Of a DNA stretch of 64,000 bases, positions 11,601 through 21,200 are shown piece by piece. Location of the stretch: the NCBI RefSeq assembly GCF_000315625.1, contig NW_005434651.1:703177-767176 (forward strand). The letters run 5' to 3'. The position numbers and the translations under genes are program-made. The notes below the pieces were generated by a model, which saw only the letters and a program-made list of their open reading frames with translations, did no database searches and had not been told where the DNA came from. The stretch is from Guillardia theta CCMP2712. Lineage: Eukaryota; Protista; Cryptophyta. Every line of letters begins with the position of its first letter. The stretch's first letter is position 1.

Positions 11601-13235
11601 ATGAAAGGGGGTCGTAAATCCGATCGGCATTTAGTATTACGGGATGAGACCCTTGAGTTACGATGAGAGACAGATAAAATTAATAAATATGAAACAACGT
11701 GAGTTTAGGGGTTCATATATTATTTGTAGGTTAATTTGTACCTACTATAATGGTGGTTTATTGCGGATACATTTTTTAAAAACAGATGGGTCACGGGACA
11801 CAAAAACAGAGTCCGGGCCGTATCTGAGAGTTTATACACTTTTTCAAATATTATCCCTAAATTTCAAGTATTGTTTCATTTATTTCAACTACAAGCACTC
11901 GCCCCCCGTCGCCCCCCATCCTTTCCCCTTCGATCACCCACCCTATCATATCGTAGGGAAATACACCCTACCCCACTCGTTGAACATCTACCCATCCACA
12001 TGACCTCCGCGTTTCCATCGACGCCTCTGCTGCAAAATTCTCTGAACTCCACATATCAAAAGTCTCTTGAATCCTCTACCGGACGTATACCCTCCCTCTT
12101 TCCACTACCCCCACCCACCAACACCAATGAACCACCTTGCTTACATAATCAAACCTTCCGTTCTACCCCCTATCGCTCAGATCCGTAGAAGTCTGATCGT
12201 ACCCCCACCCTCGAATTTCAGATGACCGACTGCAACTACCCATCTCATCATATGATTGTACCCGGTACTTCCACTTTCACTGTTGTCACACACCCTGCTT
12301 ATTTGTACCCCACCATGGCCCTCAGTTTTAGAACGAATTTTAAGGGGGTTTGCCTAAAAGTATTATAGTAGTATCTCAACAACCCCAAAGATACGACCCC
12401 CACCCCCTACCCCTCTTGTTGCATCACTACCCCATTGTCCTAGTACCCTACCCTAATTTTTCAATGCATTCAATTCGATGAAATACCGGTGATCAAGTAC
12501 GTATACCAATCGTCAGATCACCCTACCCTTTATTGCCCATTCCATTTTCCATCCCCCTCGAGCAAGGAATTTCAGGGACGTTGTGAATGCAGCGAGTAGA
12601 AGGCCAATGGTTGACGAAGAGAGACAGAAAGCGACGGGAGGAAAGATGGAGACGATAGGAAGATGAAAAGACAAGAGAGCCTGAAAGTGCTGATGGAAGA
12701 GAGGCAGATTCAGAATCACGGGGAGAGCGATATAGGGAGAAAAGATTGAAAAGGTCAAAGCTTTGTGAGTCCAGACTCAGGTATACATAGAAGGAAGGCT
12801 ACCAACAATCTTTTTGAGATACAAATGAGAATCACAAGAAAATGACATAATTGAGAATTGATCGCAATGAGTTTGGCGGTTGCCAGAGAGTATAAACAAA
12901 AGCAATCAAGGAACTTGGATCAGGATGAAGGGTGGAAAGGTACTGATCACAGTCAAGGCAAACAGGAATAAGGTAGAAAACGTATTGCTGTCGATTTTGT
13001 GGTGCGTAGAGCCCATCAAAATAGAACATGATTCTTCTAAGGGTGCGAAAATCAAAGAGTGGGGGAGTGTGGAGGTATTTGAACATCAAAGTGCAGAATA
13101 CGGAGGGTTAAAGCACAGTTTCTAGAAATGATACGTTGTATGTAGGCTGACTTTCTTATCAGGTTGCTAAAAGATTTGTTCAAGAGGCTTTTCCCGGATA
13201 TCAGTGATGCTAGTCTTGTGCGGCCTTGCCTGAAG

Positions 13236-13643
13236 ATGAGAAGTGTGCTCTTGTCAATCTCAGTCTTTCTGCTTGTCAGTGGTCAGATTTTCGCAGAACA
13301 AATCTGTGGAAGACATGATTCCAGCGCGCAAACCAATCCGCATGCCGTGAAACAGGAAGGAAATACGCAGAAGAAATGCCATTTTGGACAGTCCTGCCCG
13401 TGCAAATCATGGGCAAGCACTATACAGAGGGTTTCCTCATCCGATTCCACGCCTGAGTGGCCAACTCTGCAGAGGAGCCTTTCCGATCTCGAGAGGGAAC
13501 TTCAGGAACTTGGCGGTGTAGATATTAGCTCGTACGTTCAAGATCGCGCAAACCAAAACACAAAGATGATGCCAAGTTACCAGACAACTGAACATCGCGC
13601 AACCGTTGACAGGATGCAGATGAGAATGGTGTTCAGGAAGTAA
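13236..13643 (+). CDS. Secreted hypothetical protein (~135 aa)
   Basis: Signal peptide MRSVLLSISVFLLVSGQIFA; Cys cluster KKCHFGQSCPCK; uninterrupted ORF. Confidence 0.55.
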   Translation: MRSVLLSISVFLLVSGQIFAEQICGRHDSSAQTNPHAVKQEGNTQKKCHFGQSCPCKSWASTIQRVSSSDSTPEWPTLQRSLSDLERELQELGGVDISSYVQDRANQNTKMMPSYQTTEHRATVDRMQMRMVFRK

Positions 13644-13886: not shown

Positions 13887-14995
13887 TTAATGTCCAATCA
13901 CGTAGCTGCTGGCGTAGGGAAGGATGTTTGCAGGCTGGCTTCCTGGAATTCCACCAAGATTGTTCTCATCCGTCGCCTGTCAAACAAAAATCAGCTTGAG
14001 TCCCAAAAAAGTGTATGACAAGTACCGTGTGAGAAAAAGCGGGTCCAGCCATGTTGATCTGCTTGGTTCCTGCGCCAGTGTAGAACTGATCTGCGGGAAG
14101 ATAGGTTCCCTCCATATCTGGCATTGTCCATGTCAAAACACAAACAAACGAGGCTTGTAACGGGTGACGAAAGCTTACCAGCCGACCATTCATACAACTT
14201 TTGGGTCTTCAGGGCCTTGGTGCTCTGTCCAGATCCATCTCCCTTGTTGATGAAGGCAACGTTCGTGCCTTCGGCATTCAACTTTGACATGTGGCCAAGG
14301 CCGGAACCATCTCCAACATTTGCAAACACTTTGTTGGTGCCCATGCCCCCAGCATTGGGAAGAGGGATATAGTTCAACTTGGGAGTATCAGCAAGCATCT
14401 GAACCCTGCTCTTGGTGCTCTGACCGTCTCCGTCGCCCTTGTTCAAGAAAGCACGGTTGGTTCCCTGCTTGTCATGGAAGCTTGGGAGAGGAGCGTACTG
14501 GGGTCCAGCCTTCTCAGCAAGCATCTGAACCCTGCTCTTGGTGCTCTGACCGTCTCCGTCGCCCTTGTTCAAGAAAGCACGGTTGGTTCCCTGCTTGTCA
14601 TGGAAGCTGGGGAGAGGAGCGTACTGAGGTCCAGCCTTCTCAGCAAGCATCTGAACCCTGCTCTTGGTGCTCTGACCGTCTCCGTCTCCCTTGTTCAAGA
14701 AAGCACGGTTGGTTCCCTGCTTGTCATGGAAGCTTGGGAGAGGAGCGTACTGGGGTCCAGCCTTCTCAGCAAGCATCTGAACCCTGCTCTTGGTGCTCTG
14801 ACCGTCTCCGTCTCCCTTGTTCAAGAAAGCACGGTTGGTTCCCTGCTTGTCATGGAAGCTGGGGAGAGGAGCGTACTGAGGTCCAGTTTGCTTCTGTAGG
14901 AGGAGGAATGCAGGGCTATGGATTTCCCTCTCGTTAAGCGCCACCATCGTGCACAGCACGGCCACAACACAGGCGGCAGCTACTGCAGCCCGCAT
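13887..14995 (-). CDS. Secreted/type-II anchored tandem-repeat protein with 4 near-identical 42-aa units and 2 degenerate units
   Basis: Hydrophobic leader MRAAVAAACVVAVLCTMVAL. Exons 14995-14179, 14117-14026 and 13976-13887 (introns 61 and 49 nt, GTAAGC and GTACTT donors) give the C-terminus ...TQKLYEWSADMEGTYLPADQFYTGAGTKQINMAGPAFSHTATDENNLGGIPGSQPANILPYASSYVIGH*. Confidence 0.8.
14391..14887. repeat. Coding minisatellite, 126-bp unit x4
   Basis: Units start at 14391, 14517, 14643 and 14769. Confidence 0.95.
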
Positions 14996-15428
14996 TTCCT
15001 TTTGTCGCGGCTCTTCGTAATTACCCTTCACAGACTACCCCCTCCTTATCCATGTGGTGTTACACTCCACTCAAAGGGGTGGGGTTTACTCTGATGAAAC
15101 TGGACGGGTACTCCAGAGGCTTTCTGGTACCTACCCCTAAGGGTACCGATATTGGTGCTGGACCCGTCACTAGTCTTCAGGGAGCATGCTAGGGAGGGTG
15201 GCCATCGGGGAATAGTACCCTACCTTCTCCCCATAATATTGTGAGGAAACAAGGGGTTTTCGGTCCGGGGGCACCGAGAGTTCAATAATAGAAGGCCGTC
15301 GGAGCCGGCGGAGCGCCAGTGGCCGCGGCGCGAGCCGCCCGTGCCCGGCGGCACCGTACGGCGTGCCCGGGGCCGGGCCCGCTGGCCCGGCCCCGGGCCC
15401 CGTAACTGGGCCCGAGTCCGAGTCTTAA

Positions 15429-16257: not shown

Positions 16258-16761
16258 ATGTCAATAGGGAAGGCAGCGAAAGTGGAGGACGATATGGATC
16301 AATCGAGATCAATCTCCTCCCGTGCGACTGTCACCATCTTGAGCGAAGTGGAATGCTCAGATTGTATCGAGGAGCTTGATGCAACTTTACCCCTGGAATC
16401 TTGGGGGGAATCCACAGGAGAAGATGAGCACGATGTGTTTTCCAATTGTACCATAGAAGAGATCCTACTCAATGTAGCTCTGGGACATACCCTTGTGGGC
16501 TCACAGAGTACTTTCAGATGGCTCTCACAGGATGTTCTACAGCATGGAATCAAGCCTGCAGTCGAGAATGCGCACCAGCGAGCCTTGATGGCGCGAGGAT
16601 ATAGAACCCCACCAAATCATCAAGAACCGGAAACAGAGCACCTTGGACCCCCTCCTGTCATCAGGAAGTCAAAGAAAGCGGATAGTTCCATAATTGTTGT
16701 GAAAGCAACGCGCCTGGCAACTTCAAAGTTCACAGAATTTCCCCATGCACCATTTCAATGA
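16258..16761 (+). CDS. Hypothetical protein (167 aa)
   Basis: ATG-initiated, normal-complexity ORF convergent with the 17518 gene. No domain recognised. Confidence 0.45.
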   Translation: MSIGKAAKVEDDMDQSRSISSRATVTILSEVECSDCIEELDATLPLESWGESTGEDEHDVFSNCTIEEILLNVALGHTLVGSQSTFRWLSQDVLQHGIKPAVENAHQRALMARGYRTPPNHQEPETEHLGPPPVIRKSKKADSSIIVVKATRLATSKFTEFPHAPFQ

Positions 16762-16836
16762 GTACAACAAGAGCTATTACTTGGATAGGACACTGTAAAT
16801 TCAATATTTAACATGCATCATTTATTTATTTGACAT

Positions 16837-17518
16837 CTACAGCTTGAGTAGCAGCATACAAGAAAGTAGAACCACAAAAAATCTTTCAATACGATCCGTT
16901 GAGCCAACTTCAGGTCTAGCTCGACTCGGCAAGAAATTTGCGAAATTGCCTATGGAATTATTTAAATACATAAATCCATTTGAAATCACATCAAAGAAGA
17001 TACATTTCGACTCAGTGCAGCATTGCTGATACTGATGGACTTGGATCCCATCACCTGTCGTCCATCCTGTCGTCTGGTTGTTGCAATGTATCAGCAATCC
17101 CATCTGGTACAACTTTCAACTTACATTGGTCTTGCATTCAACGAAGCAGCTCTTCTCAAGATAGTAGTAACTTGGGGCTCCCACCCTGAAGTTCTTCACG
17201 AGAGGTCAGTCCGCCGATGAGTTCATGACGAGCGTACTGTAAAACATGCCGATCCTGCGCTGCAATTCACAAGAACTCCGATGTCCTGCATGAAGTTTGA
17301 GCCACGTTGAACATTACTTCTTCCCTTGTTTGCCTGCAGACAGCCTCCATCGTATCCACTGTTCACAACGCACGGCTGTTGAGTTGTGTAGCATTCAATG
17401 CAACAACCTGCCATACGGAGCAATTAGAACATCTCGAGACTTCAATTACTCTTGTCCCCTTACCAAAGTTAACGAGGCAGATGCCTGTGAAGCTTAAAAA
17501 AAACCTCTTCCATGGCAT
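16837..17518 (-). CDS. GPI-anchored Ly6/uPAR (LU, three-finger)-like protein with 10 Cys and a CCxxxxCN terminus
   Basis: Exons 17518-17464, 17407-17334, 17285-17238, 17193-17125, 17073-17004 and 16949-16837 (introns 56, 48 [GC-AG], 44, 51, 54 nt) splice in frame to MPWKRFFLSFTGICLVNFGCC|IECYTTQQPCVVNSGYDGGCLQDIGVLVNCSAGSACFTNFRVGAPSYYYLEKSCFVECKTNTTGWTTGDGIQVHQYQQCCTESKCN-FANFLPSRARPEVGSTDRIERFFVVLLSCMLLLKL*. Confidence 0.7.
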
Positions 17519-18235
17519 GTTTGTTTCTAGGAACCGGCGGCACAAAAGGATGAAAACGTCTTGCTTCTTGAACAAAGCATTAACATGCCGCCTGCTTCCC
17601 AAACGTGTCAGTGCAATTGTTAGGATGTCATGCACTGCAGTTGTATGAAGGTGAAACTGGAAGAAAGCAATCACTATGACATGCTACAGCAGATGATGAA
17701 GGATTGTCATTCGCCTAAAACAAGAATACGCTTCTACGAATCAACTGTCTTGGACTTTTAGCGATATGATTTTTGTCTCTCTCGCGTCTCCCTCCCACTC
17801 TCTGTTTCCTTTTCACCCTCCCTAACAGCTGATGGATGTCATTTTAGCCTCATATTTCCTCCTGAGCCTTCATGGGATAGATTGGGGCCAGACACAAGAG
17901 CATGAACTTTTGTCTCTATTTCTACGAGCATGAACGTGCGAGGACGGCATCAAGAGGGTGCCATCAGATGTCGATATTGTCATTCAGACAGGAGCGTCTG
18001 ACAGCAGCTTCCACCATGCAGCGCAGGACAGCACGACAGCCATCTCGGTGCTGGCATCGCTCATTTCTCGTCACCAGTAGGAACGGCATCGGCTTTCTGG
18101 GGTGGGTCATGATGGGGGTACGTTCTGGAGTAGGAGAAGGGGTGGTGTAACATATTTGTAGGAGGGGGTGGTCTGCAATGTTAGGGTAGGGGTGGGGGTT
18201 GAAATTGGTTGGTTGTCTCTTCGCGCGCAGGATTC

Positions 18236-21200
18236 ATGGTGGAGGCGACGGGACGGAGGAGGAGGAGGCAGGGGGAGGCAGGGGAGGAGCATGCAGTGGG
18301 AAAGAAGATGGCGGGCTCAAAGGCGAAGGCACACGGGGCAAAGTTTCGTTCGAAGACATTGAAGGTAGAAAGGATGAAGTTGTTGGAGATGGGCTACCAA
18401 GCAGAGGAAAAGCGACAGTTTCCCATTCCTCGCTTCCCCCTTACATTGGCAAGCTATGTTCTTGTCTTTCAGACGGATGATGAATGGATAAGTGGTGAGG
18501 GTGTGTCCTACGCTAAGCTAACTATGCAGCCTATCTTGGATAAGCTCCGATCTGCTGACATCATCGTCCGAGAGTTCATGAGCTCTGATAACAAGTACAT
18601 GTTTGCTCTTGTGTCCATCGCCGAAAAACGACAGAAGATGATAGCAGAAATCATGGGAGAGTATGAGCTCATCAGACTAAGACTTCAGAAGTTGGACGAC
18701 GAGATGAATGAGATCAAAGGGGCAGGCGCTTGGATGCATTTCCAGGGACATCTTGCTCCGCATTATGAGAAGTCGACAGAGGGGACTGTGTTCTCTAGCT
18801 GCCAGCAACAACACATAATTCACTTCCTGCTCAATGACGTTGATGAGCGAGTGCTAGGACCACAACTGATGCAGAAGGAGGCTTGCGAACCTGGCAACAG
18901 CATATTGGAACAGCTGCAGATAGACGAGAAGATAGTCGATCATTTCCCATTGCATCAAGAGAACAAGAGGGAGTGGCTGGAGAAGTTTTGGGTAAATTCG
19001 TATGCCAACAAGCAGCCGATAGAAGACATCCGCGAGTACTTCGGTGAAGAGATCGCTCTTTACTTTGCTTGGTTTGGTTTCACGCTGAAAATGATGTGGA
19101 TTCCTGCCATTCTTGGGGTAACAAGCAACTATGAGGAGGTTGATGAATTGAGTTTGGTGCAGGTATTAGTATTTGCTGCGCAAATCATATCAATACAATC
19201 GGGCTCTGTCGACAATCCGTTCACTCCATTGTTCTCGCTATTCGGTGAATCGTGCGAAGCTACGAGATGAAAGCTGATTTTTCACCTCAGTCGCAGCCTG
19301 GGGCATTTTCATGACGAGTGAATGGAAGAGACTTGAAATAATATATCAGAATGAATGGAGCCTTGCCGAGTATGAAGACAAAGAGGTACCCGTTGGACCT
19401 GATACCATGAAACATTTTCTGAATTCCAACAGAGCGACCGAAGAGAGTTTGTACAAAATTCAAAGACATACAAAAGATTGAACAACATCACCTCGAAAGA
19501 GGTTGAGTTATTATGCCATTCTTGCGATCTCGAGGTTGTGTAACAAGTTCTTTCAACCAGGAGTTCTATCCCGATCCAATTTGGAGAAGCATATTTCTTA
19601 CAGCGAGCGTGACCGCAGGTGAATTTGCATTATCTCTTCTTCTTGTTGTTATAGCAGTAGCCGAACTTTTCTGCCGCAGTATCTGGTGTGATCTTTCTGA
19701 TCACGTTAACGACTTTGGGGTTGGAAGTTTTGAAGTCTAGTCTTGGGAGCATCGAAGGAGGATCCGGTTTGCTCAGAGCTTTCTGACCCCCAGGGCTGCC
19801 ATGACTGATTCTCTCAGAGTGGATTCCTCGGGTTATCGGCACTCTACTGCAGGCGATCCTGATCCTAGCCTTCCGTTGGGCATCAGAACATCTTTGTGAG
19901 TACTTCACTGCCCTCGAGAACTGGAGATTCGATTCGCAGGTCATTGTGATCCACATTTGTGGTGGCTGTTCTAACCTTGCCTTGTAGTATCGAAATGCGT
20001 ATGTTTCAAAACTATTGTCGATCACGTTCATCAACGAGTTCTTTCCGATATTCTGCGTTGCGTTTTTGAACAATCGCTATCAACCTTTTGGTGCATACAT
20101 GGGTTGTCCGGTGAGGCCAAGCGAGATTCTTCTGAGCGGGATCTGATGTGTGATTTAGGGGTCAAGCTGTGTCGATTACTTGGAGATTGTTGTCTCTATA
20201 GTGTTCCTCACTCGGCTAGTGAGCAGAAGAGTATTCGAGATGATGCGAACATCCAATCGACCAAACGAGGAGTCAGTCGATGATATCGGTAAATGCTGTC
20301 ATCGCACTTATTTGCTTTCGCTGACAACCACCTGCCGTGAACAGAAGAGGAGGTTGGGCGAGTTGAAAATGTGATGATCTATCGTTCATATGCGTGTGAT
20401 CTGATCAGCATGTGTGTACAGGAGTTCAAGAAGCCCTCGTTCCCAGGGATTGACCATTTCTTCGACTCAAGGGTATCAGTTGCCAGGCTCAAAGCAGCCC
20501 CTGTTGACATGAACTTCAGGTGGTTGACTTAGGCTACATCTTGCTGTTCGGATCAGCGTTTCCGCTCATGGTGCAGCATTACGGTACAGCAAGCTTCAAG
20601 AGCTGACCAGCTCTCTATCAGATTCTCATCTTCGTTGCAACGAGCATCTTTGAGCTCAGAGGAAGAGCACGACAACTCTTGTTCTCTCTGCGACGACCTC
20701 TGTGAGTCCCACGAATCAGAGGGGGCAGGAAATAACTTTCAGTGTCCTTTAGGTACAGATGCTCGCAGACAGTGGGGGCATGGGGGATCATTCTGGACAT
20801 CATAGTGATCATGAGCATTGTTACGCAGAGCGCGTATATCTGCTTCACATCTAATGCTGTCTTGTACTACTTTCCCAACATCACGGTTGGCCTTGCTTCA
20901 TGGTGCGTATGTCGTGATTTGATCTTGATACGTCAGATGTACGGGCGAACGGCACTAGCGCTAGCGCTAGAGCACATCTTGCTCTTCATCAAGGCAGATT
21001 TCCATGACTCGATGCGATCAAGTCGCTGAACTTCTGCTCGCAGATTGTGGTGGAATCTCAAGTCGACATTCCGGGCGATGTCGACATCGCCTGCAAGCGG
21101 AAGCTGCACGAGAAGTCAGTCTTTCTTGACGGCCTGGGAGAGTATGACGAGGTATGAGGACCGTGAGGCTCGTGACTGAGTTCGGCTGAGCATCCCCACT

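Follow-up and report, generated by a model that had tools for sequence, protein, structure and literature searches.

A candidate six-exon gene of the cryptophyte Guillardia theta with a Cys-rich, possibly Ly6/uPAR-like surface product

Does the nuclear genome of the cryptophyte Guillardia theta encode a GPI-anchored three-finger protein of the Ly6/uPAR (LU) type? The LU/three-finger domain is regarded as having arisen in animals, in connection with multicellularity (PMC13719153). [quoted passage not shown] It was carried out with HMMs of clan CL0117 on annotated proteomes, algae not being among them (PMC13719153), and LU genes would escape it if they were unannotated, because annotated proteomes were used. 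Our search of the literature for LU domains in protists found no paper linking the two. The locus that raises the question lies at positions 17518-16837 on the minus strand of a 64-kb window (the whole stretch of DNA analysed), which spans G000:C23:703177-767176 in a host genome of 87.1 Mb in 669 contigs. As detailed below, the sequence observation at 16837-17518 is real, and the six-exon gene model built on it appears plausible, though unproven.

All six minus-strand pieces of the initial annotation were found in the sequence at the positions collected in Table 1, and they join in frame. Joining by script gave a CDS of 429 nt and a product of 142 aa with 14 Cys in all, ten of which lie between IECY and CCTESKCN. 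In the joined translation we could read a signal-like start ending in GCC, the segment IECY...CCTESKCN, a spacer of 22 residues, and the hydrophobic end FFVVLLSCMLLLKL followed by the stop, in agreement with the earlier description. The introns are 44-56 nt long, and they include the GC-AG intron at 17333-17286 and the AAG acceptor at 17194 that had been singled out. One detail needed correction: the pieces are split over four stop-to-stop ORFs, and not over three. Past intron 1, the reading frame that begins at the ATG continues for 62 codons without a stop. The two overlapping hexamers located 7-16 nt past the stop are a possible polyadenylation signal.

Table 1. Parts of the candidate gene model and their coordinates in the 64-kb window
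Feature	Position	Strand	Description
Exon 1	17464..17518	-	first in-frame ATG (A at -3); 18 codons and 1 base; signal-like peptide, MPWKR and hydrophobic core
Intron 1	17408..17463	-	56 nt, phase 1, GTAAGG...CAG↓G; CTAAT 16 nt before AG
Exon 2	17334..17407	-	end of signal peptide (GCC), then IECY...GGCLQ; five Cys; Cys-masked codon LLR +4.1
Proposed intron 2	17286..17333	-	48 nt, GC-AG, in frame and stop-free; without CTRAY motif
Exon 3	17238..17285	-	DIGVLVNCSAGSACFT; two Cys, NCS glycosylation sequon
Proposed intron 3	17194..17237	-	44 nt, GTACGC...AAG; obligatory frame change; CTGAC 12 nt before AG
Exon 4	17125..17193	-	NFRVGAPSYYYLEKSCFVECKTN; two Cys; best codon score of the model, LLR +9.2
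Proposed intron 4	17074..17124	-	51 nt, GTAAGT...CCAG; in-frame TGA; CTGAT 17 nt before AG
Exon 5	17004..17073	-	TTGWTTGDGIQVHQYQQCCTESK and first base of the last Cys codon; codon LLR -3.0
Proposed intron 5	16950..17003	-	54 nt, GTATCT...ATAG, 24% GC; in frame and stop-free
Exon 6	16837..16949	-	spacer with omega-site candidates S114 and G121; 14-aa hydrophobic end; TAG stop; codon LLR -4.4
Two overlapping AATAAA hexamers	16821..16830	-	7-16 nt past the stop

The five introns differ in what the protein requires of them. Introns 1 and 3 change the frame and intron 4 is interrupted by its TGA, so that these three are obligatory, whereas introns 2 and 5 are optional because their lengths are multiples of three and they hold no in-frame stop. 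Retention of proposed intron 2 would add 16 hydrophilic residues and no Cys, and read-through of intron 5 would give CCTESKCI, the Asn of 'CN' being present only when intron 5 is spliced; CCTESKC itself lies inside a single ORF, and all the retained-intron variants keep the same 14 Cys together with CC-x4-C. Competing junctions were also noted. For intron 3, an alternative of equal length (17229-17186, GTCATG...TTCAG↓G) has the consensus CAG↓G acceptor and alters three residues, none of them Cys. For intron 4, splicing to the competing acceptor CAG↓GT at 17055 would mean that CCTESKC is no longer read in frame, and the mature part would then contain an odd number of Cys.

The splice sites were scored with a small matrix derived from 16 homology-supported introns of HSP70 paralogues, which had been aligned to intronless paralogues of the same genome. 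The consensus obtained was AG↓GT(A/G)AG(G) ... CAG↓G. These 16 introns range from 44 to 387 nt, and since 6 of them measure 44-65 nt, the proposed introns are of normal size for this genome. Compared with all GT and AG sites, both sites of intron 1 (donor 8.8, acceptor 8.3 bits) stand at the 99th percentile, and intron 1 is the only strongly supported intron of the model. For the other four, one of which is the GC-AG intron, the scores are average or poor: 1.3 bits (donor) and 6.0 bits (acceptor) for intron 2, 0.4 and 0.0 for intron 3, 4.1 and 2.7 for intron 4, and 0.1 and 1.6 for intron 5. Short GT-AG pairs with at least 8 bits at both sites numbered 11 in 528 kb of real strands versus 4 in the reversed control; two such top-scoring pairs occur in the 64-kb window, intron 1 among them. 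The branch-like motif CTRAY is located 12-17 nt before the AG in each of the obligatory introns 1, 3 and 4 and is absent from the optional introns 2 and 5. Genome-wide, this motif is weakly enriched, and the combined signature of donor, CTRAY and AG is mildly enriched at 50-53 nt (38 vs 16). Unsupervised discovery of introns by ORF bridging and EM gave no signal above control.

Side observations on intron content were made in the course of this analysis. Two intronless and near-identical HSP70 genes of the cytosolic type are arranged head to head about 600 bp apart (G000:C31:298772-300589, minus strand, and 301199-303016, plus strand), and other HSP70 paralogues of the genome carry many introns of 44-390 nt. 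Several of the dynein heavy chain loci (e.g. C32:79833, C67:134405, C109:119498 and C53:241298) have uninterrupted frames of 4,100-4,500 codons, indicating that these genes are essentially intronless in an otherwise intron-rich genome.

How far the choice of junctions shapes the product was then estimated by enumerating all spliced paths from the same ATG, allowing introns of 38-75 nt with GT or GC donors and AG acceptors, exons of at least 30 nt and ORFs of at least 100 codons. As many as 853,074 in-frame spliced ORFs could be threaded, and in-frame joining therefore carries no statistical weight. By summed splice score, the six-exon model ranks 1,815th overall and 526th among 209,417 five-intron models; a number of other paths score higher than this model, and in some of them CCTESKC is lost. 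Random valid paths contain 10.3 Cys on average, because the region is rich in TGY in every frame (13 TGY codons in-frame and exonic, 9 off-frame, 11 intronic). The motif CC-x4-C is kept in 69% of these paths and a hydrophobic tail ends 10% of them, while CC-x4-CN is given by 1.6% and the full set of features by 0.02%. From the last two values it follows that the exact Ly6-like signature is partly a product of junction choice.

These counts bear directly on one alternative, in which the gene is real and its product either adopts some other disulfide-rich fold, as a small secreted or tail-anchored Cys-rich protein, or comes from a different splice form, one that keeps introns 2 and/or 5, splices to the 17055 acceptor or already ends after exon 3; the resemblance to Ly6 would then be in part an artefact of the junctions chosen. 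Strong support for intron 1 only, the dependence of 'CN' on an optional intron with poor sites, and the better score of the acceptor at 17055 all agree with such an alternative. However, the Cys framework is the same in every retained-intron variant, the 17055 variant has an unpaired Cys count in its mature part, and the acceptor chosen for intron 4 in the initial annotation is the first AG past the branch-like CTGAT. Taken together with the searches for family membership described below, we consider another fold or splice form somewhat unlikely.

In the joined model, a basic n-region is followed by a hydrophobic core at residues 6-22, and by the heuristic -3/-1 rule cleavage after C21 would fit. 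Among the omega-site candidates, also obtained by heuristics, S114 stands in the context S-R-A and G121 in G-S-T. The hydrophobic tail has a mean hydropathy of 2.61 and, at 14 aa, is somewhat short for a GPI signal. Two N-glycosylation sequons are present in the joined product. GPI anchoring is feasible in this organism, since two GPI transamidase subunits, Gaa1 (E 1.6e-45) and PIG-T (E 5.5e-27), are encoded in the genome. The architecture assigned to the product, namely signal peptide, ten Cys and GPI-type signal, thus holds for the proposed model and passes both heuristics; its hallmark 'CN', however, hangs on the weak optional intron 5.

The LU consensus comprises eight to ten Cys in a canonical order that includes C1-x2-C2, and the three-finger beta fold of the family has four core disulfides. 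A phase-1 intron where the signal peptide ends is a trait of the Ly6/uPAR family, as is found for intron 1 of the candidate. Like the LU proteins CD59, Lynx1 and Drosophila Quiver/Sleepless (clan CL0117), the candidate is small and has a signal peptide, its first mature Cys stands at position 3 and is followed by Tyr, and its model shows ten Cys, of which the C-terminal seven are in LU order and, if intron 5 is spliced, end in CC-x4-CN, then a short spacer and a hydrophobic end of the GPI type. The gaps between the ten Cys are 6, 9, 9, 5, 17, 3, 20, 0 and 4. From C51 onward they read C-x5-C-x17-C-x3-C-x20-CC-x4-C-N, which we take to be the order of the CD59 type. Unlike in LU proteins, the C1-C2 spacing is 6 residues rather than 2, an atypical feature already pointed out in the initial annotation and consistent with a different fold, and the N-terminal loops are longer. 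The spacing would change if C21 served as C1: cleavage of the signal before C20/C21 would give a start of C-x2-C-x6-C and a domain with 12 Cys. Other differences are that the candidate pieces are without a profile or sequence match, that the gene model is split into six tiny exons, and that the host is a cryptophyte, the family being reported from Metazoa only (PMC13719153).

Comparison with the generic Cys-rich surface proteins of protists, either GPI-anchored or secreted, gave likeness of another kind. The candidate shares with them the signal peptide, the disulfide-rich ectodomain, the C-terminal hydrophobic signal, the orphan sequence and fast evolution; they differ from it in being without the CC-x4-CN end and the LU-ordered C-terminal Cys.

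Membership in the LU family was examined by a series of searches with the unspliced pieces. Pfam detected no family at E<=10 in the unspliced ORF pieces, and the search of PDB sequences with these pieces gave no match. Against the six-frame translation of the genome, PF00021 and PF17064 had no match, and PF16975 and PF00087 found nothing at the candidate locus. Phmmer with the 66-aa ORF against 1.84 billion representatives and the word-index search with the 91-aa ORF were both empty, two metagenome scans gave no match, and no paralogue was detected in the genome at the DNA or protein level, the locus itself being the only match. Against these empty searches stands the protein-language-model search with the 91-aa C-terminal ORF (recognition 2463), in which all the family-bearing neighbours belong to the LU clan (QVR, UPAR_LY6_2, Toxin_TOLIP, UPAR_LY6 and DUF753), at scores of 0.78-0.84 that stay below the lead threshold of 0.9. 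The 66-aa N-terminal ORF was not recognised by the language model (recognition 1044). This sub-threshold list of neighbours is the sole tool result pointing to Ly6/uPAR, and so the family assignment of the initial annotation gained a hint from one method and nothing from the Pfam, LU-clan HMM, PDB and phmmer searches.

Two matches elsewhere in the genome were recorded in the same scans. The PF00087 (Toxin_TOLIP) match at G000:C55:488750-488992 (plus strand; 21.2 bits, E 0.04, at the curated cut-off) proved to be a Cys-free exon of MORN repeats and was rejected as a false positive, which is worth knowing when this genome is screened for three-finger domains. At G000:C5:760995-761159 (minus strand), a weak match to UPAR_LY6_2 (PF16975; E 0.83, 15.9 bits) lies inside an open frame of 1056 codons.

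Structure prediction was likewise applied to the unspliced pieces. Single-sequence AF2 gave models of low confidence (pLDDT 57.6 and 54.5); the model of the C-terminal ORF contains a long beta-hairpin that ends at CC, with pLDDT of about 70, and a terminal helix at 73-89. Searches of these low-confidence models against the atlas and PDB yielded no fold match and nothing usable. For the alternative of another disulfide-rich fold, the lack of LU-clan HMM signal in the unspliced pieces and the six-frame genome counts in its favour, as do the negative codon scores of exons 5 and 6, whereas the exclusively LU-clan neighbourhood in the language model counts against it. As judged from the sequence, LU-fold identity of the product is a plausible reading. 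A three-finger-like binding module would be the likeliest fold, because the Cys framework from C51 is in Ly6/uPAR order, and it could have arisen by convergence or through homology too old to detect.

The route that we envisage for such a product is as follows. It would enter the ER by its N-terminal signal peptide and be cleaved near GCC↓IECY, leaving an ectodomain of roughly 86 residues, disulfide-locked and presumably mostly beta. The C-terminal hydrophobic signal would hold the product at the outer face of the cell membrane, and most probably GPI transamidase would replace this signal by a GPI anchor, attached at S114 or G121. Transcription and the precise junctions (in particular those of introns 2, 3 and 5) are predictions of this scheme, as are cleavage, anchoring and fold. 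That the product of 16837-17518 is a three-finger-like surface protein of the GPI type is our tentative reading, held at somewhat less than an even chance.

The presence of a gene at all was evaluated from the setting of the locus, its codon usage and the chance of its features. Searches of the genome at the DNA and protein level matched this locus and no other, so that it is single copy and not a repeat. On the plus strand, an anoctamin-family gene (first long exon 18209-19270; Pfam Anoctamin E 6e-13) is divergent from the candidate gene, the two starts being separated by about 700 bp. An ATG-initiated ORF of 167 aa at 16258-16761 (plus strand) is convergent with the candidate gene, their stops being 76 nt apart; this ORF has neither a Pfam family nor an exact record, and its codon score is slightly negative (-7.4). 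Farther away, a 346-aa ORF at 13991-15031 (minus strand) combines an N-terminal hydrophobic segment with four near-identical repeats of 42 aa and scores +59 bits, and no credible Pfam family was found for it. The ORF at 13164-13643 (plus strand; codon score -4.6, no Pfam match found) has an internal Met, after which come a stretch resembling a signal peptide (MRSVLLSISVFLLVSGQIFA) and a region with Cys, and may be another small secreted-protein gene, or nothing. Positions 1-2000 of the window are low in GC (37%), with a run of N marking an assembly gap around 600-1500.

Codon usage was scored with a log-odds model trained on 52 long ORFs of the same genome, for which the first long exon of the anoctamin gene (+53 bits) served as the benchmark of a normal exon in this neighbourhood. 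The joined CDS scored +1.9 bits, compared with 22 +/- 14 for true coding pieces and -25 +/- 13 for open pieces in a wrong frame; much of this deficit comes from the 14 Cys codons, which the model penalises. Masking Cys raised the score to +7.1 bits; this value corresponds to the 14th percentile of true coding sequence and exceeds 96% of the open pieces outside long ORFs and 99% of the wrong-frame pieces. The other two frames of the joined CDS gave -17 and -10. Exons 1-4 score positive and exons 5-6 negative, and GC1/2/3 is flat at 0.44/0.46/0.49. Codon usage thus mildly favours coding on the minus strand and is weakest in the exons that carry the hallmark motif. A plus-strand gene across the locus was rejected, as every plus-strand ORF there is negative in codon score.

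The chance of the feature set was tested with a pattern that requires CC-x4-C in an ORF of 40 aa or longer, 15-60 residues behind this motif and then a 14-residue hydrophobic end before the stop. A six-frame search of 333 kb of real sequence met this pattern, the thresholds of which were chosen after the data had been seen, once, namely at this locus. Among 40 million random codons generated from global or local 3-mer frequencies it turned up 0-1 times, or about 0-4 times per genome. If a top-quality short intron is also required on that strand, no more than 700 nt upstream, the expectation is multiplied by roughly 0.01-0.02, and the ATG exon with its signal peptide and 62-codon open continuation lowers it further. 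The combination of features is unlikely to have come from pure chance.

These results were weighed against the second alternative, that the locus holds no functional coding gene and consists of chance ORFs in an intergenic, TG-rich stretch that separates the anoctamin gene from the ORF at 16258-16761, or of a decayed pseudogene or a non-coding transcript. Such a stretch would by itself offer the more than 850,000 in-frame paths and their Cys richness, and short Cys-dense ORFs are common in the window (n=112); the near-zero unmasked codon score beside the +53 and +59 of neighbouring real exons, the flat GC1/2/3 and the failure to find a homologue or paralogue in any library searched point in the same direction. 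We nevertheless regard it as unlikely: the features would occur jointly by chance well under once per genome, the Cys-masked codon score stands above 96-99% of null pieces, the ATG is in good context and its signal peptide is directly followed by the top-percentile intron, and the hydrophobic end stops exactly at TAG, with AATAAA thereafter. A real, or once real, gene is therefore probable at 16837-17518 on the minus strand, most likely a single-copy, multi-exon nuclear gene of the cryptophyte itself. A true animal Ly6/uPAR gene, acquired by contamination or recent horizontal transfer, might be suggested by the detection of the family in animals only in a broad survey (PMC13719153), but is highly improbable, as the locus lies within a contig of more than 767 kb beside algal-type genes of the same short-intron style, and similarity to animal proteins was not detected by the word-index, PDB and phmmer searches with the unspliced pieces.

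With a cryptophyte gene as the preferred reading, two broader proposals were considered. By analogy with Lynx1 and Sleepless, which modulate animal ion channels, the candidate protein might modulate the anoctamin channel/scramblase, whose gene shares with the candidate gene a divergent promoter region of roughly 700 bp; this is much less likely than the wider proposal. The wider proposal is that G. theta carries genuine three-finger (LU-fold) GPI-anchored surface proteins, the candidate locus encoding one of them, as an instance of the fold or a convergent copy of it outside animals that was missed by annotation through its splitting into tiny exons; at present we judge this doubtful. If a cryptophyte does have a bona fide LU-fold GPI protein, either the origin of the fold is much deeper or evolution converged cleanly on a disulfide scaffold, and small genes made of many short exons would be shown to escape surveys that rely on annotated proteomes.
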